Origin: Obrimoposthia wandeli
Lineage: Eukaryota
Length of the DNA stretch: 64,000 nt
NCBI GenBank assembly: GCA_977020255.1
Contig: CDROCS010000506.1
Coordinates: forward strand, 1,674,001 to 1,738,000
Direction of reading: 5' to 3'
Made by a program: the position numbers and the translations under genes
Part shown: positions 12,230 to 20,245 of the stretch, piece after piece
How the letters are laid out: every line of letters begins with the position of its first letter
How positions within the stretch are numbered: position 1 is the first letter of the stretch
Notes under the pieces: model-generated
Told to the model about the DNA's origin: nothing
Seen by the model: the letters and a program-made list of their open reading frames with translations, nothing else
The model's database searches: none

Positions 12230-15106
12230 TTACTCCACAGCAAATAACTGCTGCCAATAGTCTGTCACGATTTTGCGCTGGGCAGTAAATGCAGTATTTG
12301 CGACGATACCCTTTTTACCAAGTAAATTAAGGCGGTGTATCTCATCACGCATTTGGCAATAACTAGCCGTTAAGTTTGACCCCAACTCTTCGCTAATAAG
12401 TCCCTCAGATACACAACGGCTAATAATACGGACATTATCCGGCCACAGCTGGATCTTAGGCATCTCAGCCGCATGATTTAAGACGATATACTGCATCATG
12501 AATTCAATATCAGTAATACCGCCCGCAGACTGTTTAATATCAAATTCATCGGCAGTGGTTTTTAACAAATGATTACGCATTTTCAAACGCATTTCGACCA
12601 CTTGTTTTTGTAATTCAGCGGTATCACGCGGAGTGGCAATAATACTGCGTCTTACCTCACTAAAACGTTTTTGGATCAACTTATCACCATAAACCAAACG
12701 CGTGCGGACAAGTGATTGATGCTCCCACGTCCAAGCCTCTTTGCTCTGATAATCCAAGAATCGCGATACCGGACAAGCCAGCACACCCGAGCTACCAGAC
12801 GGACGTAAGCGCATATCCACTTCATATAAAATACCAGTACTGGTACGGGTACTAAATATATGAATAATACGTTGCGCAAGACGCAGGTAGAACTGACGAC
12901 TATCAATCTGTTTAACGCCATTGGTCATGCCTGCTGTTTCGCAATTATGAATGAACACCAGATCCAAGTCCGAGCCATAACCTAATTCGATACCGCCAAG
13001 TTTACCGTAAGCAACCACAGCAAAGCCTTTCTCACCGGTTTCGACAACGTTGTGTGGCACACCATGTTTCTCTTCCAGTTGTTGCCATGCCAGGTTAACC
13101 ACGTTATCAATCACCGCTTCCGCTAACCAAGTCAGGTGATCACTTACTTTCATTAACGCTAATTCACCAGCAATGTCCGTCGCTGCAATACGCAGTAACT
13201 GAGTTTGCTTAAATTGACGCAAGGCCTCTAATTGCTGTTCATGGTCTTCTTCGGGAATACGCAGCATAAACTGACGCAATTCACTGCGATATTGATGCAG
13301 CGGTGTTGGGTGGTAAAGATGCGATGGTACCAACAATTCATCGAGTAAGATCGGATGCGTCGATAACTGTTTCGCCACCATCGAACTGGCACCACATAAA
13401 CGTAATAATTGCGTTAAGGCTAACTCATTTTCAGCTAACAATTCTAAATACGCAGTACGATTTAAAATCTTCAATAACAGCGCGATAATACGCGGGAGCA
13501 AGGCCACGGGATCATCAGCTTTAAGAATAGAAAATAACAGTTTAGGTAATAACTTTTCGATAGTTTGGCGACCACGTGGTCCCACCGTTTTGCGTTCACA
13601 ATCACTTTTAAAATGAATTAAATCACGCGCAAAAGTTTGTGCGTCTTGCTGGGTTAAACCATATTCTGCAAGTAAGGCTACTGCTTCATCGGCAGATAAC
13701 TCTAAATGCCATAAATCTAACGCTGGCAAAGACTCTTCATGATCATCGTCATCACTACCAATAACCAAGCTAAACTCGGCATTAATCTTGGCCATCACCT
13801 GATTAACCTCAACGTAGAAACTCTCCCAATCAGGATAATCTAATACGCTAATTAAACGGCTACGATCTAAGTCTGACTGCGGCAAGGTTTGCGTTTGTGC
13901 ATCATTAATCTGTTGGAGAATATTTTCTACTTTACGTAAATAACAGTAACTCTCGGTCAGTATCGTATAACTCTCGTTTGAAAGTTCGCCAATTTCCAGC
14001 AATACCTTAAGGGTCGCTAATAACGACTTGATTTGTAACACCGGTTCACGGCCACCACGAATAAGCTGGAAGGTTTGTGCTATAAACTCAACTTCACGAA
14101 TACCACCACTGCCAAGTTTGATATTATCCTTTAAACCTTTGCGGCGTACTTCAGCTTTGATCATGGCTTTCATATTACGCAGTGCATCAATCGCACTAAA
14201 ATCCACATAACGACGATAAATAAACGGACGTAACATCTGCTCTAGTTCAACCCGAGTTTCGGCATTACCACCGAGCGCACGGGCTTTCACCATCGCATAG
14301 CGTTCCCAGTCACGACCTTGGTTCTGGTAATATTCTTCAAACGCATTAAAGCTCATCACTAAGGGGCCTGAATCACCAAATGGGCGCAGACGCATATCAA
14401 CACGATAAGCAAAACCATCAGCAGTGAATTGATGCAAGGCGGCAATTAAACGCTGGCCTAAACGCTGGAAGAATTTTTGATTAGCGACGCTACGGCTTGC
14501 CCCCACAGTCTCACCCGTTTCAGGATAAGTAAAAATCAGGTCAATGTCAGATGAGAAATTCAGCTCTCTACCGCCAAGTTTGCCCATGGCTAAGATCACG
14601 AGTTCTTGCTTGACGCCTTCCTCGTTAACCGGTGTGCCCTGCTCTTTACACTGTAATTGATACAACCAATCTAATGCACCTTCAATCAGGCTATCAGCCA
14701 AATGCGAAGTATGAGCTAAACTTTCTGTTAGTTCGGCAACTTGTAATAACTCTCGCCACGCGATAATACACATATGAAAACGGCGGAATTGTCGCACAGT
14801 ACGTAATAAGCTTGATTCAGAATCACAGGCCGTTAATTGTGCTTTTAAATGACGCGAAACTTCCGCGGTACGTGATGCCTGTAAAAGTAAACCAGACTGC
14901 CAAATATCGGTAAGTAAGCCGGTGTTGTTGATACAACTTTCAGCAATGAAATCACTTAACGAAAATACCCGTTGAGTTTGGGCTATTTGTTCGGTTGATA
15001 ATAATGCTAAATCAGCGCTATTGCGGTCGCACCAACGTTGCCAATACATACTTCCTGTATCCGCTAACACATCAACAATTTGACATTCTGTACTCATAAA
15101 CGACAT
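12230..15106 (-). CDS. glnE: Glutamine synthetase adenylyltransferase/adenylyl-removing enzyme
   Basis: 958 aa; two nucleotidyltransferase domains (MGKLGGRELNFSSDIDL; YGKLGGIELGYGSDLDL), NIKLGSGGIREVEF. Confidence 0.97.
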   Translation of the reverse strand: MSFMSTECQIVDVLADTGSMYWQRWCDRNSADLALLSTEQIAQTQRVFSLSDFIAESCINNTGLLTDIWQSGLLLQASRTAEVSRHLKAQLTACDSESSLLRTVRQFRRFHMCIIAWRELLQVAELTESLAHTSHLADSLIEGALDWLYQLQCKEQGTPVNEEGVKQELVILAMGKLGGRELNFSSDIDLIFTYPETGETVGASRSVANQKFFQRLGQRLIAALHQFTADGFAYRVDMRLRPFGDSGPLVMSFNAFEEYYQNQGRDWERYAMVKARALGGNAETRVELEQMLRPFIYRRYVDFSAIDALRNMKAMIKAEVRRKGLKDNIKLGSGGIREVEFIAQTFQLIRGGREPVLQIKSLLATLKVLLEIGELSNESYTILTESYCYLRKVENILQQINDAQTQTLPQSDLDRSRLISVLDYPDWESFYVEVNQVMAKINAEFSLVIGSDDDDHEESLPALDLWHLELSADEAVALLAEYGLTQQDAQTFARDLIHFKSDCERKTVGPRGRQTIEKLLPKLLFSILKADDPVALLPRIIALLLKILNRTAYLELLAENELALTQLLRLCGASSMVAKQLSTHPILLDELLVPSHLYHPTPLHQYRSELRQFMLRIPEEDHEQQLEALRQFKQTQLLRIAATDIAGELALMKVSDHLTWLAEAVIDNVVNLAWQQLEEKHGVPHNVVETGEKGFAVVAYGKLGGIELGYGSDLDLVFIHNCETAGMTNGVKQIDSRQFYLRLAQRIIHIFSTRTSTGILYEVDMRLRPSGSSGVLACPVSRFLDYQSKEAWTWEHQSLVRTRLVYGDKLIQKRFSEVRRSIIATPRDTAELQKQVVEMRLKMRNHLLKTTADEFDIKQSAGGITDIEFMMQYIVLNHAAEMPKIQLWPDNVRIISRCVSEGLISEELGSNLTASYCQMRDEIHRLNLLGKKGIVANTAFTAQRKIVTDYWQQLFAVE

Positions 15107-15288
15107 CCATATAATTAAGGCGTAAGATCCAATTAATTTAACAATTTATATCAACTGTTTATATCAACAAGGCACATCTAGACAGGCTATGCCTTACATG
15201 CTATTAATTAGCGATATTAATTTATTTAGTAAACTTATCATTAGTAAGCGATTATGGCAGCTAAAATCGTAAAAGAAGGTAACCTTTA

Positions 15289-16185
15289 ATGTCAGTTTTT
15301 GAAACTATCCTATCGTCAGACCTACTGTTGTTTTTAGCAGTCGATCTCATCATCGCCTTAGTACTTTTATCCGCCATGCGATTCTTTACCGGCGCAGTCG
15401 ACAAAATAGATACCATCAATGAATTAGCCACCCGCGACAACTTTGCTTTTGGCATTAGTTTAGCTGGCGCTATTTTTGGCTTAGGCATCGTGCTTTCTGG
15501 GGCGATTTCCGGTGAAAAAGCAGCCACACTGCCCCTCGAAATATTAGGCATTAGTCTGTATGGTCTCGCCGGATTGGTATTAATCAAACTAGGTCGCTGG
15601 TTCCATGATCGGGTATCACTCAATAGACTCGATAAAAATACCGAAATTGCCGAACGTAATGTCGCCGTCGCCATTGTTGATGCTTGCGCCTCTATTGCTA
15701 CGGCTATTATTATTCGCTCAACATTAGTTTGGGCTGAAGACTTAGAATTAATGACCTTTATTGCGATCTTCAGCGGTTTTATCGTTTCCCAAACCATTAT
15801 GCTACTGATGACACGTTACCGTGAACACCGCTATTCACGCGGTAATCTAGGCACCACGATGCAACAAGCGTTTAAAGACAACAATATTGCTGTTGCATTA
15901 CGCCATGGTGGTTATCTTATTGGTGTTGCGATATCCGTAACAATTGCCAGTAACTATATCTATTATGATAGTGCCAATCTGATGATAACATTAGGATCAT
16001 GGATGCTGTTTAGCATGGTCATGCTGACGACCTTTACCGTGCTGGCAATTATTGCTAAAAAAATAATCCTTACTGGCGTGAATATTAATAAAGAAGTAGA
16101 TTTACAAAATAACGTCGGCATCGCAGCGATGGATATGGCCATTAATTTATCAATCGCCTTTATTCTAACTGCATTATTAATTTAA
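15289..16185 (+). CDS. DUF350 family membrane protein (tandem YjfL-like domains)
   Basis: 298 aa, ~8 hydrophobic segments; repeated NFAFGISLAG / NVAVAIV / NIAVALRHGG / NVGIAAM motifs; next to yjfI-like and pspA-like genes. Confidence 0.8.
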   Translation: MSVFETILSSDLLLFLAVDLIIALVLLSAMRFFTGAVDKIDTINELATRDNFAFGISLAGAIFGLGIVLSGAISGEKAATLPLEILGISLYGLAGLVLIKLGRWFHDRVSLNRLDKNTEIAERNVAVAIVDACASIATAIIIRSTLVWAEDLELMTFIAIFSGFIVSQTIMLLMTRYREHRYSRGNLGTTMQQAFKDNNIAVALRHGGYLIGVAISVTIASNYIYYDSANLMITLGSWMLFSMVMLTTFTVLAIIAKKIILTGVNINKEVDLQNNVGIAAMDMAINLSIAFILTALLI

Positions 16186-16321
16186 CCCCTTGCACCTACT
16201 TAAAGGACGCTAAGGTGTTACTTCATTGATGATAATGAACTTTCATGCCGTTTACAGATCAAATAAAGTAACCGGATTGTATATAAGTATTATAAAATAA
16301 TATAAATTAAGCGCTAGCCAC

Positions 16322-16377
16322 TTGACATATTATGTCCTGGGGCTTAAAGTTAATATCACTTAGACATAATATGTCAA
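16322..16377 (+). promoter_or_regulatory. sigma70 promoter TTGACA-17-TAAAGT with two palindromic operators GACATA-W-TATGTC
   Basis: -35 at 16322-16327, -10 at 16345-16350; palindromes at 16324-16336 and 16363-16375. Confidence 0.8.
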
Positions 16378-16388
16378 AAAGGAACAAG

Positions 16389-16802
16389 ATGAACATACAT
16401 AAAATTGCAAATTATCTTAATGATCTTGGCGACAAGTCTGATACTGGTTACAAGTTTGACTGCACCCCTATTTCGGGTGATGTTGATGTACTGCGTGTTG
16501 ACGTTGAAGGTCGTGAAGAAATTCCAATTTTTGTTTCTGTCACTGATGAGCAAATTCTTTGTATTGCTTATTTATGGGGCGAAAACGAAGTTAAAACAGA
16601 AAATCGTGTAGAAATGTTAGAAGCAATGTTAGAGCTTAACATTCCAATGCCATTGTCATCATTCGCTAAAATTGGCGACATGTATGTGGTATACGGCGCA
16701 TTATCAGTGCAATCAACTATTGCCGATGTCGAACACGAATTAGTTGTATTAAGTGATAACAGCCTTGAAGTTATTACTGAATTATCAGATTATTTAGTTT
16801 AG
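16389..16802 (+). CDS. YjfI family protein (DUF2170)
   Basis: EIPIFVSVTDEQILCIAYLW, LNIPMPLSSF, YVVYGALS; start placed at ATG 16389 behind AGGAAC. Confidence 0.82.
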   Translation: MNIHKIANYLNDLGDKSDTGYKFDCTPISGDVDVLRVDVEGREEIPIFVSVTDEQILCIAYLWGENEVKTENRVEMLEAMLELNIPMPLSSFAKIGDMYVVYGALSVQSTIADVEHELVVLSDNSLEVITELSDYLV

Positions 16803-16824
16803 CCCTACTTCTTAGGAGAAGTTT

Positions 16825-17517
16825 ATGAGCATTTTTAAGAAAATAATGACCGCTATCCGCGGCGGCGCCCGTGAAGTAGGCGAAGGTATTGTTGATGCAA
16901 ACTCAATGCGTATCTTTGAACAAGAAATTCGCGATGCAGAAACACACTTAACCAACGCTAAGCGTAATTTAACTGACGTAATGGCGAAGCAAATGCAATC
17001 AAGCCGCGAGCTTGAACGTGTTAAAGCTAACTTAACTGAACACGAAGGTTATGCAGTACAAGCCTTAAATGCCGGTAACGAATCATTGGCATTAGAAGTA
17101 GCTGAAAAAATCGCCCAACTCGAACAAGAAGTTATCGAACAGCAACAAAACCTAGATAGCTTTACTAGCAGCGCAACAAAACTAAAAGATTTAGTGAAGA
17201 AAAGTGAGCGTCAACTAGCTGAACACCAACGTCAATTAACCATGGTTAAGACAACGGACAGTGTACAAAAAGCGACATCAGCAATCACAGATAACTTTAG
17301 CGCAAGCAATTCAAAACTGCTAAGTGCAAAAGATTCACTTGAGCGTATTAAGCAAAAACAACAAGACTTTGATGATCGTATGGTTGCCGCAGATGAACTA
17401 CATGCTGAAGGCAGTGATCAATCACTTAAAGCGAAACTCGCTGAAGCCGGTATTGGCCAACAGCAAAGCAACGCAAACTCAGTACTAGAGCGTTTGAAAG
17501 CCAAGCAAAATAGCTAA
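16825..17517 (+). CDS. PspA/IM30 family protein (YjfJ-like)
   Basis: 230 aa coiled coil; KKIMTAIRGGAREVGEGIVDAN, EQEIRDAE..L, C-terminal SVLERLK. Confidence 0.9.
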   Translation: MSIFKKIMTAIRGGAREVGEGIVDANSMRIFEQEIRDAETHLTNAKRNLTDVMAKQMQSSRELERVKANLTEHEGYAVQALNAGNESLALEVAEKIAQLEQEVIEQQQNLDSFTSSATKLKDLVKKSERQLAEHQRQLTMVKTTDSVQKATSAITDNFSASNSKLLSAKDSLERIKQKQQDFDDRMVAADELHAEGSDQSLKAKLAEAGIGQQQSNANSVLERLKAKQNS

Positions 17518-17563
17518 GTTTAACGACTAATCGCTTTATAAATTAGTTAGTCAGTTAATCCCC

Positions 17564-17603
17564 AATAGGAGCAGTCATCGTGGTAACACGTGCTGTTCCT
17601 ATT
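17564..17603 (+). terminator. Hairpin after the pspA-like gene
   Basis: AATAGGAGCAG...CGTG-GTAA-CACG...CTGTTCCTATT followed by T. Confidence 0.5.
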
Positions 17604-17668
17604 TGTCATTCTGCTAAACCATAATCTTTAATGGTTTAACACTTAAATGGTTTAATACTTTAGGAGCC

Positions 17669-18313
17669 ATGATGAGTTTCTTCAAAAACTTATTTAAAAA
17701 ATCTGCACCAGCAACTCCAACCCGCGAACTCAATCACGTCAGCAAATTAATTCTCGGTGATATTATCGAATTTAGCGACAGTTTCACTTTACCAAGTGAA
17801 GTACGTCAGCAAAAATTTGAAGTGATCGCGATTGAAACATTTGAGTTTGAACACCAACATTACCCACGCTTTAAACTACAAGGCGAGCAACAGACTTATG
17901 TTTGGTTAACATTGCCAGGTCACGACCACAACAATTTCCAACTTAGCCTAGAACTAACCCGTGAAGAAGTATCACAGTTATTCGATTTAGCCTTGTTCGG
18001 TGACGTATTTGAAGCAGGTTTCACGGAATTACCTAGCCAACAGCCGGTTTCATTAGGTGATTGGCATGCTGAGCATTATTACCAGCAGGATATTGCCACG
18101 GTCGGTTATCATCATAGAACAGACTTTAGAACCTCAGCACCTTCGCAATATGCCGATGAAAATCCAGGCCGCCAATTTGAGTTCTATCATTTGCATGATG
18201 CTAAAGAAAATAAACTAATCGATATTATGGTTTATAACACTGGCGATACCGATGTGTACTTGACCGTACAGCTTGGTAATGACAGTATTACAGGATACTG
18301 GCCAATAGCATAA
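17669..18313 (+). CDS. YjfK-like protein (DUF2491/DUF4178-type)
   Basis: 214 aa, MSFFKNLFKK start; position after yjfI/yjfJ-like genes as in the enterobacterial yjfIJK order. Family call rests mainly on context. Confidence 0.6.
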   Translation: MMSFFKNLFKKSAPATPTRELNHVSKLILGDIIEFSDSFTLPSEVRQQKFEVIAIETFEFEHQHYPRFKLQGEQQTYVWLTLPGHDHNNFQLSLELTREEVSQLFDLALFGDVFEAGFTELPSQQPVSLGDWHAEHYYQQDIATVGYHHRTDFRTSAPSQYADENPGRQFEFYHLHDAKENKLIDIMVYNTGDTDVYLTVQLGNDSITGYWPIA

Positions 18314-18336
18314 ACACAGTACAAGGCAGATTGAAG

Positions 18337-18657
18337 ATGGTTAAATCACGTGAATTACCGGAAAAATGGCAGTCATCCCAGAAAGCGATGAAAGCAGTGC
18401 AAGTCGCATTTGATATGGATGAAAAAATCCAATACAAGATCCGTAAAGCGGCACTCGATCATAACTTAAGCCCCTCAGAACAGATCCGAGACATTCTCGG
18501 TTTAAGTGTCAATAAAAGACCTAAAAGACCACGCCTAACAGTTTCATTAAATAATCAAGACTACGTTGAACTCGCTGAAAAATATGGTTTAAAACCAGAA
18601 CAGCAATTAGAAATTAAGAAGTTAGTTATTGAGGACTTGGTTAAGTTCTCTGAATAG
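18337..18657 (+). CDS. Small basic protein, predicted tandem ribbon-helix-helix DNA-binding protein
   Basis: AVQVAFDM-DEKIQYKIRKAALDH-NLS-PSEQIRDIL and RLTVSL-NNQDYVELAEKYGL resemble strand-helix-helix units; CDS supported by codon context, fold is inferred. Confidence 0.6.
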   Translation: MVKSRELPEKWQSSQKAMKAVQVAFDMDEKIQYKIRKAALDHNLSPSEQIRDILGLSVNKRPKRPRLTVSLNNQDYVELAEKYGLKPEQQLEIKKLVIEDLVKFSE

Positions 18658-18666
18658 CCAAGAGCT

Positions 18667-18701
18667 CAGCAATCAGTGACATCACATGCCCCTGATTGCT
18701 G
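18667..18701. terminator. Hairpin between convergent RHH-like gene and ygiF
   Basis: CAGCAATCAG...CTGATTGCTG, 10-bp inverted repeat. Confidence 0.55.
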
Positions 18702-18736
18702 CGTTCTAAGATTCTATCCTCTAAAAGTACTACTTT

Positions 18737-20245
18737 TTAATCTTCTAGCCAATATGGTCGCATGGTTAACGCTTGCAGACGCGTCTGTTCCAGCGCTTCC
18801 AATAGTGACCGCTGTTTACGTGCTAATATCTTTTCAATTTGCACAGCGATCGTTGGCGGCTGCTGCTTTGCAACGTCCGTAAGCACCTCTAGGATCGCGA
18901 GATCATCGATACCCTGTAAAATATCTTGCCAAGGCAGTCTAAACTTATCACGACGTTCAGGTCGATAATGATGGCTAAAACAATGGCCAATTAATAAATT
19001 TTTCTTCAGCTTTTCTTGCAAGCCTAAATAGTCGCTCAACGTCAGTTCGGGAGCAGACAATGACGAATCCAGCACACTCTGCCAGCTTTTTTGTAAATGA
19101 GCATTGGCGAACGATAATACGTTGGCGGTATCGAGTTTCACACTCGTTAAACCTTCGCTTAATAACTTACTCACTGACAGCATAATGCGGGCATATCTTG
19201 GGCTATTAAATAACGTTTCAATATCAGTAAAATCAACATAACGAGTTTGCAGTGCTTCTACCTCTTTGCTAATACGCTTATATTCTGGCAATTTACGCAT
19301 AAATTGACCGTTCGTCAGCATGACCTGATGTAATTGCGAGGCACTACTAACCGCTGATAATTGCTGTTGTAGCCAAGCCAATTCTGTTTTACTTAAATCT
19401 ATATCAGGCAGTATCACGGCATAACTTTGCATCGTTTGTAAGATCAAAGCCACTGCAACATCAACTTCAGCAAGCGCATTAATGTCCTGCGTTTCTAAAT
19501 ACTGCTGCTCATGGTGCTGCCAATGCGCATAACTTTGCGTTAATGTCGCCATAAAAATATCCGTTAAACGCTCTGTTTTTAATCCTTTGCTTGCCACTGC
19601 TGGCATCTTCAAGGTCAGGGGTTTAATCTTCGGCGTATACAGACCTGCAAGTTGATAACCACGCTTAGCTTTGCTGACATTGCCCAAGCGTACGTTGCCT
19701 AATTGGGTAATTTGTTGTGCAAGGGTAAATAGATCGGTGATATCACCGCGTACCAACTCTAATTCAATCTCACAGATAGGGTAACTTTGTGTGCCACTAC
19801 GAGCCATGCCTTGATCGAATACCACTTCAATTTCAGCATCATTAGCTAATTTAATATGCCACATAGTACGCTCGAAATCTGTGGTAAATAGATCCACTAA
19901 GTCCGTTTGTAATTGCATAATATCAGTACCAACAGGCCAAATTTCAACGGGAAAATCAGCTAATGTAGGCACATCACCAAGTAACGGTAAGTTATATTCT
20001 GGGCGTTGGTGTAAGCCACCACGGACAATACCTGCGGTTTTAATTGTTTGCTCGGCAAAGTTTAAACTCTTGCGCGTACGTAAACCAAAGTCGAACTGAC
20101 GAAATTGGGACGTAGTTGTATCAAAATAAGTATTCGATAGCGGCTTTACCGCCTGTTCGATAATCACATAGTCCGCTAGTAGCATGGCTAATTGTGATTT
20201 CACTTGTGGTTTCACAACAAACTTTATTTCAACTTCCGTACTCAT
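18737..20245 (-). CDS. ygiF: CYTH + CHAD domain protein (inorganic triphosphatase)
   Basis: EVEIKF, NTYFDT, GLRTR, EQTIK, RPEYN, ICEIELEL, SKAKRGY; helical C-terminal CHAD region. Confidence 0.9.
   Translation of the reverse strand: MSTEVEIKFVVKPQVKSQLAMLLADYVIIEQAVKPLSNTYFDTTTSQFRQFDFGLRTRKSLNFAEQTIKTAGIVRGGLHQRPEYNLPLLGDVPTLADFPVEIWPVGTDIMQLQTDLVDLFTTDFERTMWHIKLANDAEIEVVFDQGMARSGTQSYPICEIELELVRGDITDLFTLAQQITQLGNVRLGNVSKAKRGYQLAGLYTPKIKPLTLKMPAVASKGLKTERLTDIFMATLTQSYAHWQHHEQQYLETQDINALAEVDVAVALILQTMQSYAVILPDIDLSKTELAWLQQQLSAVSSASQLHQVMLTNGQFMRKLPEYKRISKEVEALQTRYVDFTDIETLFNSPRYARIMLSVSKLLSEGLTSVKLDTANVLSFANAHLQKSWQSVLDSSLSAPELTLSDYLGLQEKLKKNLLIGHCFSHHYRPERRDKFRLPWQDILQGIDDLAILEVLTDVAKQQPPTIAVQIEKILARKQRSLLEALEQTRLQALTMRPYWLED

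Follow-up and report, generated by a model that had tools for sequence, protein, structure and literature searches.

Probable twin palindromic operators on the predicted promoter of a pspA-type operon and a candidate ribbon-helix-helix autorepressor encoded by its last gene

The 64,000-nucleotide stretch of DNA analyzed here (called the window below, and the source of all coordinates unless noted) is the forward strand, positions 1,674,001 to 1,738,000, of contig CDROCS010000506.1 in the Obrimoposthia wandeli assembly GCA_977020255.1. It carries a short bacterial operon that encodes a PspA-family protein, and two 13-bp palindromes, here called O1 and O2, overlie the predicted promoter of that operon. 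Our comparisons strongly support the proposal that O1 and O2 are twin operators on a sigma-70-type promoter and that the product of the last gene of the operon, a small protein with a predicted ribbon-helix-helix (RHH) fold, would be its autorepressor. The evidence consists of the geometry of the promoter, the conservation of its two sites, the co-occurrence and co-variation of these sites with the last gene, and the fold modeled for the first half of the encoded protein; from it we infer that this protein binds the sites, that it represses the promoter when bound and that stress on the membrane relieves the repression. The explanation as a whole, in which operators, RHH binder, negative autoregulation and a membrane regulon belong together, is in our judgment probably correct.

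The predicted twin-operator promoter and its conservation

The two sites are perfect copies of GACATAWTATGTC with a center-to-center distance of 39 bp: O1 is GACATATTATGTC (16324-16336) and O2 is GACATAATATGTC (16363-16375), neither being assigned to a strand. O1 spans the -35 region and spacer of the top sigma-70-type match (10 of 12 positions) in a scan of 15000-19500, which consists of the -35 hexamer TTGACA (16322-16327, plus strand) and, 17 nt downstream of it, the -10 hexamer TAAAGT (16345-16350, plus strand); the last four bases of TTGACA are the first four bases of O1. O2 lies between the -10 hexamer and the AGGA ribosome-binding site (16380-16383) of the DUF2170 gene, whose ATG at 16389 agrees both with its homologues and with the position of AGGA, and so placed it would cover the start of transcription and the early leader of this predicted promoter. 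The 15-nt arms 16322-16336 and 16363-16377, which contain the two sites, are 100% complementary and make a perfect inverted repeat. A preliminary description of this DNA had claimed twin copies of GACATA-W-TATGTC with centers 39 bp apart, one on a consensus -35 and the other between the -10 and the ribosome-binding site, as well as the perfect 15-bp inverted repeat, and each of these statements proved exact. No copies of the palindrome are expected by chance (100 dinucleotide-preserving shuffles of the window), and the listing for the bacterial contig to which the window belongs has no exact copies besides O1 and O2. A count of the motif over the contig's own assembly is uninformative because that assembly is 1.35 Gb long and mostly non-bacterial, and the contig listing and related complete genomes were used instead.

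Are the two sites kept where the surrounding sequence has diverged? We fetched 80 loci around the gene for the small protein from Moritella, Shewanella, Colwellia, Thalassotalea and other genera, and every one of them has an exact twin GACATAWTATGTC about 2 kb upstream of the small gene and before the DUF2170 gene, with the -35 hexamer TTGACA also kept in all 80. The operators thus lie over the predicted core promoter of the candidate regulator's own operon at every locus, and conservation at orthologous promoters, on which the preliminary description had staked its proposal, is exact throughout. Both sites occupy constant promoter positions amid diverged flanks; when the loci are aligned on the sites, the mean information is 1.94 bits per column for O1 vs 0.87 and 1.14 in its flanks, and 1.96 bits per column for O2 vs 0.60 and 0.53. 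The layout is constant and reads cTTGACATAWTATGTC, a short variable stretch, (TG)n and a -10 hexamer, and then the second 13-mer. The counterparts of the -10 hexamer are TATCTT in Shewanella and TAAATT in Colwellia and Thalassotalea, mostly with TGn in front.

The distance between O1 and O2 is 33-36 bp (mostly 34) in Shewanella, 34-37 bp (mostly 35-36) in the Colwellia and Thalassotalea group, 38-39 bp in Moritella, and 15 and 27 bp in two distant loci. A fixed helical phasing of the two sites was rejected on the basis of these values, which speak against the proposed twin-operator arrangement to the extent that they preclude any claim of a fixed cooperative geometry. Because the spacing varies, the conserved unit is the 13-mer and not the 15-bp inverted repeat or a particular phasing. 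The same measurements bear on whether the repeats might instead act as nucleic-acid structure, either as a leader hairpin that controls translation or as a terminator of the upstream DUF350 gene. The arms do form a perfect 15-nt inverted repeat, and O2 is probably transcribed and adjoins the ribosome-binding site, as such a role would have it. However, arm 1 overlaps the -35 hexamer and so is outside the transcript, each 13-mer is kept as a palindrome in itself although the arm distance and the sequence between the arms vary, lone copies turn up repeatedly at unrelated promoters (below), and no run of T follows the repeats; we consider a structural role highly improbable.

Outside Moritella the loci have one more exact site, about 3.9 kb farther upstream, before a lipoprotein gene, where it overlaps a -35-like TCGACA or TAGACA that is followed by TGnTATA. 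A third palindrome of a different kind, the degenerate TTGACACTAAATGTCA, was seen after the twin sites in one Thalassotalea leader (L009:4055-4075).

The small basic protein encoded by the last gene

The candidate reader of O1 and O2 is encoded at 18337-18657 on the plus strand; it is 106 amino acids (aa) long with a pI of 9.33, in agreement with the basic protein of about 106 aa first reported for the last gene, and it is the sole basic product of the operon. The protein itself has no Pfam match, but more than 1100 homologues were found, with relatives in 404 species-representative genomes. An AlphaFold model based on a 71-sequence alignment (pLDDT 86.5) contains a first unit with an extended segment at residues 19-27 and helices at 29-41 and 46-53, and then a basic linker, a second extended segment at 64-71 and helices at 73-83 and 90-105. 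Unit 1 has the order of elements that defines the RHH fold, a strand and then two helices joined by a tight turn, and this turn (N-L-S-P-S) is conserved in the homologues. Foldseek gave 34-residue local matches of unit 1 at 0.6-1.0 Å to Arc (1baz), CopG (2cpg, 1b01 and 1ea4) and PutA (2rbf), and a 37-residue match at 1.9 Å to NikA (2ba3), with Foldseek probabilities of 0.66-0.90 overall. In an all-against-all structure search, RHH proteins matched on residues ~18-57 fill nearly all of the top 50 rows, among them NikA, Arc, AmrZ, ArtA, PutA, NikR, omega and Mnt (Z 2.3-4.1). Judged by this model, unit 1 (residues ~18-57) is a ribbon-helix-helix.

Several results weigh against this assignment and have to be set beside it. 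The structural Z-scores are low, at most 4.1, because the domain is tiny (40 residues), and the monomer model is without beta-sheet by DSSP. The RHH models in Pfam and NCBIfam gave no match to the small protein at E values up to 1, and a profile search against PDB sequences returned NikA at 0.42, AvtR at 0.57 and FitA at 0.87, none of them significant; an RHH assignment from sequence alone was dropped for this reason. The comparison with known RHH families that had been suggested for this protein thus succeeded for unit 1 at the level of structure (Arc, CopG, PutA and NikA) and gave nothing significant at the level of profiles. The second half of the protein is the less favorable one. Unit 2 (residues ~64-105), when folded alone, has an extended segment and helices 16-26 and 33-48 (pLDDT 87.8), but its fold search retrieved mixed helical hairpins and few RHH rows (Z 2.4-2.6), and hhalign aligned unit 1 with unit 2 over 13 columns at the helix-turn-helix junction with a probability of 15%. 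The two strand-helix-helix units originally proposed therefore become one unit that is RHH by fold and one without a confirmed RHH fold, and a tandem RHH protein with unit 2 as its second RHH is plausible on these models. A likeness of the whole chain to the tandem RHH protein AvtR was rejected, since the superposition has an rmsd of ~17 Å. Near the N-terminus, Pro8 and Trp11 are invariant among 18 aligned close homologues, and the conserved Trp is present in most of the shown rows of a wider alignment, ~30%-identical relatives included.

Linkage of the palindrome to the gene, and other predicted targets

The small protein is present in 77 genomes of a sample of 251 from the same order, and DUF2170 is present in all 77 as well. 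Whether the palindrome is confined to genomes that carry the RHH gene, a question raised by the preliminary description, has a mixed answer: the exact motif occurs in 63 of the 77 protein-positive genomes (at least two copies in 59), and it also occurs in 10 of the 174 protein-negative ones (at least two copies in 3). One of these three multi-copy cases is a contig-end artefact in which the contig stops inside the gene for the 214-aa protein that precedes the RHH gene. Another of the three has an exact twin site with a spacing of 34 bp in a phage-like context (L170:1501-1547, G133:C715), near an open reading frame that resembles a DNA-binding protein or a terminase small subunit; neither RHH nor DUF2170 was found in the very fragmented genome that carries it. 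Another 28 genomes are DUF2170-positive and protein-negative, and these have a distant DUF2170-PspA dyad (32-39% identity); neither the 214-aa/DUF4178 gene nor the palindrome was found in 16 such dyad loci examined. At some of the DUF2170-PspA loci from RHH-less genomes (L127-L133 and L135; several of these genomes are 2.4-2.9 Mb) a conserved small-protein motif, roughly Y-R-Q-R-L-R-E-Q-G-L-V-K-K-E-V-W-I-L-P-E, is encoded by the reading frame directly upstream of DUF2170. It resembles the basic arm and the beginning of the strand in CopB- or RHH-like regulators, and an analogous regulator may be encoded there.

In the 14 protein-positive genomes that lack the exact motif, variants of it stand at identical promoter positions. 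Thirteen of these genomes are of the Psychromonas type, in which the protein is ~60% identical to that of the window, TTGACATATAATGnC spans the -35 and GACATTWAATGTC, a perfect palindrome, precedes the ribosome-binding site; the remaining genome has GACATACTATGTC and GACATGTTATGTC. The perfect Psychromonas variant was found only once per genome, at the operon, and a regulon-wide switch to the variant motif in that genus was rejected on this ground. More distant relatives extend the series. At 49% identity to the window protein (locus L102) the exact motif is present twice, 15 bp apart, upstream of DUF2170, and at ~40% identity, with Asn in strand 1 (L145), it is present with a spacing of 27 bp. 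Two relatives that are ~30% identical, have changed strand residues (His in strand 1) and are encoded in the same operon have the altered palindromes GCCATTWAATGGC and GTCATAATATGAC; locus by locus, the sequences upstream of DUF2170 are GCCATTAAATGGC and GTCATTTAATGGC (L106) and GTCATAATATGAC (L144). Taken together, the variants suggest that the half-site drifts with the protein while the 6-1-6 palindrome is kept, as a co-evolving regulator-operator pair would predict.

This linkage is imperfect in several respects, all of which tell against the pairing of this protein with these sites. A small number of lone exact sites lie in genomes in which the RHH protein was not found, the L145 relative retains the exact motif in spite of its strand Asn, the inner operator bases of Psychromonas are changed and its predicted strand residues are almost unchanged, and the co-occurrence is confounded by phylogeny and operon type.

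The palindrome is also found at promoters elsewhere in these genomes. Sites with at most one mismatch number 9-14 per genome in four genomes vs 2-3 for a reversed-pattern control, and exact sites outside the operon number up to 10 vs 0 for that control. The genome-wide scan proposed at the outset thus brought out sites that recur before membrane-related genes in nine genomes: ~30 extra exact sites examined in these genomes are all within 350 bp upstream of a gene, and ~26 of them fall into five recurring membrane-related classes. These have NfeD and/or band-7 (SPFH) genes downstream (10 loci), a ~100-aa secreted protein followed by a second PspA (7 loci), the divergent region between nhaA and an Lrp-type gene (6 loci), HtpX, an M48 protease (2 loci), and a short (216-220-aa) YidC-type insertase (2 loci). 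Shewanella, Colwellia and Thalassotalea have exact sites before the NfeD/band-7, second PspA, HtpX and short YidC genes, and likewise before the operon of lipoprotein, DUF350 and spermine-synthase-like genes. Moritella dasanensis has exact copies only at the two operon sites. The window's contig does have two sites that match 12 of 13 positions, GACATAATATGAC upstream of nhaA and GTCATAATATGTC upstream of a Bax1-I/YccA-like gene (contig ~330.9 kb, L166:1757, and ~936.6 kb, L167:1594), and both are common to this contig and M. dasanensis, with flanks that are 83-91% identical. Since the same protein-operator pair would be at work at these other membrane-gene promoters, the extra sites point to a membrane-homeostasis regulon of that pair.

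It is conceivable that the palindromes are true operators which are read by another factor encoded elsewhere and that the RHH protein has a different role. Other families, for example Lrp/AsnC, also suit a 13-bp palindrome with an A/T center, and in six genomes an Lrp/AsnC gene is divergent from nhaA with the site in between; the many unlinked promoters with sites, and the isolated sites in genomes where RHH was not found, would likewise be compatible with such a factor. We rejected the Lrp/AsnC protein beside nhaA as the true binder because only 8 of the 251 sampled genomes encode its orthologue, and none was found in those Shewanella and Moritella of the sample that carry the motif. As to any other factor, no further DNA-binding gene is conserved in the operon, and both the presence of the motif and its sequence variants follow the RHH gene. 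Finally, RHH repressors are typically autoregulated from their own operon; that they are encoded in the operon they control is the rule for the fold, as in CopG, Arc, Mnt and the antitoxins. A reader encoded elsewhere is in our view unlikely, and the RHH protein of the operon is the likely repressor of these operators.

Proposed control, operon genes and related systems

How might the control operate? In the model we favor, a sigma-70 promoter with O1 and O2 would drive four genes, which encode the DUF2170 protein, the YjfJ-type PspA, a DUF4178-like protein and the RHH protein. The last of these would bind each palindrome as a two-fold symmetric oligomer, its two ribbons reading the outer GACA/TGTC with the A/T-rich center between them, in the manner of CopG at its 13-bp element. 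Occupied O1 (-35 and spacer) and O2 (start and early leader) would block RNA polymerase, and because of this the operon, including the repressor gene, would be negatively autoregulated. Membrane stress would relieve the repression, and a strongly structured gap with a hairpin after pspA may hold the regulator scarce relative to PspA. The sigma-70, repressor-controlled system first proposed for this DNA is borne out as far as the twin-operator promoter and the RHH-linked sites are concerned, the support being comparative.

The RHH protein could also bind the same sites as an activator or a dual regulator. Some RHH proteins, such as AmrZ, both activate and repress, and at several of the extra targets a distance of 90-250 bp separates the site from the start codon downstream. 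On the other hand, both of the best-defined promoters have the site across their -35 and spacer, the second site of the operon promoter covers the start region in a geometry that occludes RNA polymerase, and no activator is needed because the -35 is already consensus. Activation by this protein seems to us very unlikely, and repression is the mode that we retain.

In a broader and considerably more doubtful proposal, marine gammaproteobacteria (Moritella, Shewanella, Colwellia, Thalassotalea, Psychromonas and their relatives) would have a hitherto unrecognized membrane-integrity regulon with the RHH protein as its master repressor, and this regulon would couple the YjfJ-type PspA/ESCRT-III to SPFH/NfeD, HtpX, the short YidC, NhaA and YccA. 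Under this tentative proposal, repression would be relieved when, under stress, the DUF2170 chaperone, PspA or the DUF4178 protein captures the repressor, and the invariant N-terminal P-x-x-W arm might mediate the capture. The circuit would be the mirror image of PspA-PspF, built on a repressor. A complex prediction for the DUF4178-like protein with the RHH protein scored 0.18 vs a mark of 0.34; it was made without controls, allows no verdict and is not used as evidence.

On its own promoter CopG, as a tetramer, occupies a pseudosymmetric 13-bp element that includes part of the -35, and the window operon resembles CopG (pMV158), Arc, Mnt and MetJ both in the small basic strand-helix-helix protein encoded in the operon that it represses (here a prediction) and in the 13-bp (pseudo)palindromic operator, which overlaps the -35 element in a promoter of the sigma-70 type. 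Unlike that class, the window protein matches no Pfam RHH model and has an N-terminal P-x-x-W arm, a basic linker and a second strand-helix-helix-like half, and its predicted targets are several unlinked chromosomal membrane-homeostasis promoters and not plasmid copy-number or phage genes. The tandem RHH proteins, TraY of the F plasmid and AvtR of an archaeal virus, share with it a layout of two successive strand-helix-helix-like segments in ~100 residues, and AvtR is among its weak sequence and fold matches, but unit 2 of the window protein alone does not preferentially retrieve RHH folds. The Psp response (PspF/sigma-54), LiaRS-LiaH and ClgR-PspA resemble the predicted system in that a PspA/IM30 operon is under dedicated control within a membrane-protective regulon. 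Known Psp control is by PspF and sigma-54, with PspA as anti-activator, or by LiaRS or ClgR. The window operon differs from the classical Psp system in having a conserved sigma-70 promoter with operators in place of sigma-54 and an enhancer-binding protein, and in having DUF2170, DUF4178 and a YjfJ-type PspA in place of the PspBC partners and canonical PspA. Other bacteria run such membrane systems through separate circuits (PspF, Cpx and sigma-32). The YjfJ-type PspA with its DUF2170, DUF4178 and DUF350 partners is widespread.

The regulator as such is not new: the CesT/DUF2170-PspA-DUF4178 operon class, with an RHH transcription factor as optional last gene, was described with Shewanella oneidensis SO_3765 and SO_3766 as example loci (PMC11237479, mSystems 2024). 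The window has the same genes in the same order, and the paper gives no operator, promoter or regulon (PMC11237479). In the bac operon of Pseudomonas aeruginosa, BacA (DUF2170) and BacB (PspA-like) form a DUF2170-PspA dyad, and the levels of the other Bac proteins rise when BacA is lost, a hint that DUF2170 feeds back on expression of the operon (PMC10948618). By analogy this could point to the derepression signal, but it is only a lead. Unlike the window, the bac operon has a proposed sigma-54 site, and no RHH gene or palindrome is described for it (PMC10948618). Our literature search, which did not extend to RegPrecise-type databases, found no paper with the motif, the operator or the regulon, and it found nothing relevant for the locus tags SO_3764-3767. 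The regulator-operator pair that had been put forward as undescribed is thus half known, in that its RHH member was already recorded (PMC11237479); the operator, the promoter logic, the co-variation and the predicted regulon appear to be new. An RHH autorepressor of a familiar kind would here have an unfamiliar role, with a YjfJ-type PspA and membrane-homeostasis genes under its control. If this is true, it would be a third wiring of the Psp-type response, in which an RHH repressor keeps a sigma-70 promoter shut, and it would place PspA, SPFH/NfeD, HtpX, YidC, NhaA and YccA in one envelope-homeostasis program of relevance to cold- and pressure-adapted marine bacteria. An exact operator with its candidate repressor is also a handle by which the whole regulon can be predicted in culturable strains, such as Shewanella oneidensis.

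The cluster consists of five plus-strand genes between glnE (12230-15106, minus strand) on its left flank and a CYTH-CHAD triphosphatase (ygiF-like) gene (18737-20245, minus strand) on its right. The first of the five (15289-16185) encodes a DUF350 (YjfL-like) membrane protein (PF03994, E 5.2e-35), a functionally linked upstream neighbor of the operon, and no operator with three or fewer mismatches was found upstream of it (15100-15300). The regulated operon begins with the DUF2170/YjfI-like gene (16389-16802), whose product matches PF09938 over its full length (residues 5-136 of 137, E 8.9e-37) and is given a CesT-type chaperone fold in the literature. The PspA/IM30 (bacterial ESCRT-III-like) protein (16825-17517) matches PF04012 over residues 2-229 (E 1.3e-41) and is 38% identical to the product of the PspA-family gene that adjoins DUF2170 in an E. 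coli-type genome; it is assigned to the YjfJ type because it is far below the canonical PspA equivalog TIGR02977 (17.1 bits vs a cut-off of 243). The gap of 151 nt that follows (17518-17668) folds as RNA into three hairpins, of which the middle one, between pspA and the next gene (~17564-17603, plus strand), is terminator-like; the folding energy of 17515-17640 is -37.3 kcal/mol (z -6.4 vs shuffles). This hairpin is possibly an attenuator that cuts expression of the two distal genes and so sets the ratio of PspA to regulator.

The 214-aa acidic protein encoded next (17669-18313) has no Pfam match itself and is weakly DUF4178-like: four of nine homologues match PF13785 (best E 2.9e-4), and profile methods led to the same assignment in PMC11237479. 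The label yjfK-like that this third gene had been given did not survive, since DUF2491 (YjfK) gave no match at E values up to 1 with the window protein and eight homologues, and tblastn found no match to the protein in the E. coli-type DUF2170-PspA locus (L141). In every locus seen, the 214-aa gene is directly upstream of the RHH gene, the two being neighbors or overlapping.

The gene order in Shewanella, Colwellia and Thalassotalea is lipoprotein, DUF350, 7TM-spermine-synthase-like, DUF2170, PspA, 214-aa protein, small protein and K+ channel. The Moritella operon is a reduced form: the lipoprotein, DUF350 and spermine-synthase-like genes form a triad at a separate locus (L168, M. dasanensis, G002:C26:23500-31000), which has no operator with three or fewer mismatches, a second DUF350 gene is retained alongside the psp-like operon, and the K+ channel gene after the RHH gene is absent. 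The point of insertion of the cluster between glnE and the CYTH-CHAD gene, two genes that we take to be adjacent in E. coli, is common to Colwellia and Thalassotalea. The closest protein matches of the window region are to M. dasanensis and Moritella sp. (93-95% identity), and the window belongs to a Moritella-type bacterial contig of more than 1.7 Mb inside an assembly of 6912 contigs; this contig comes from a bacterium that is associated with, or contaminates, a large and presumably eukaryotic genome project.

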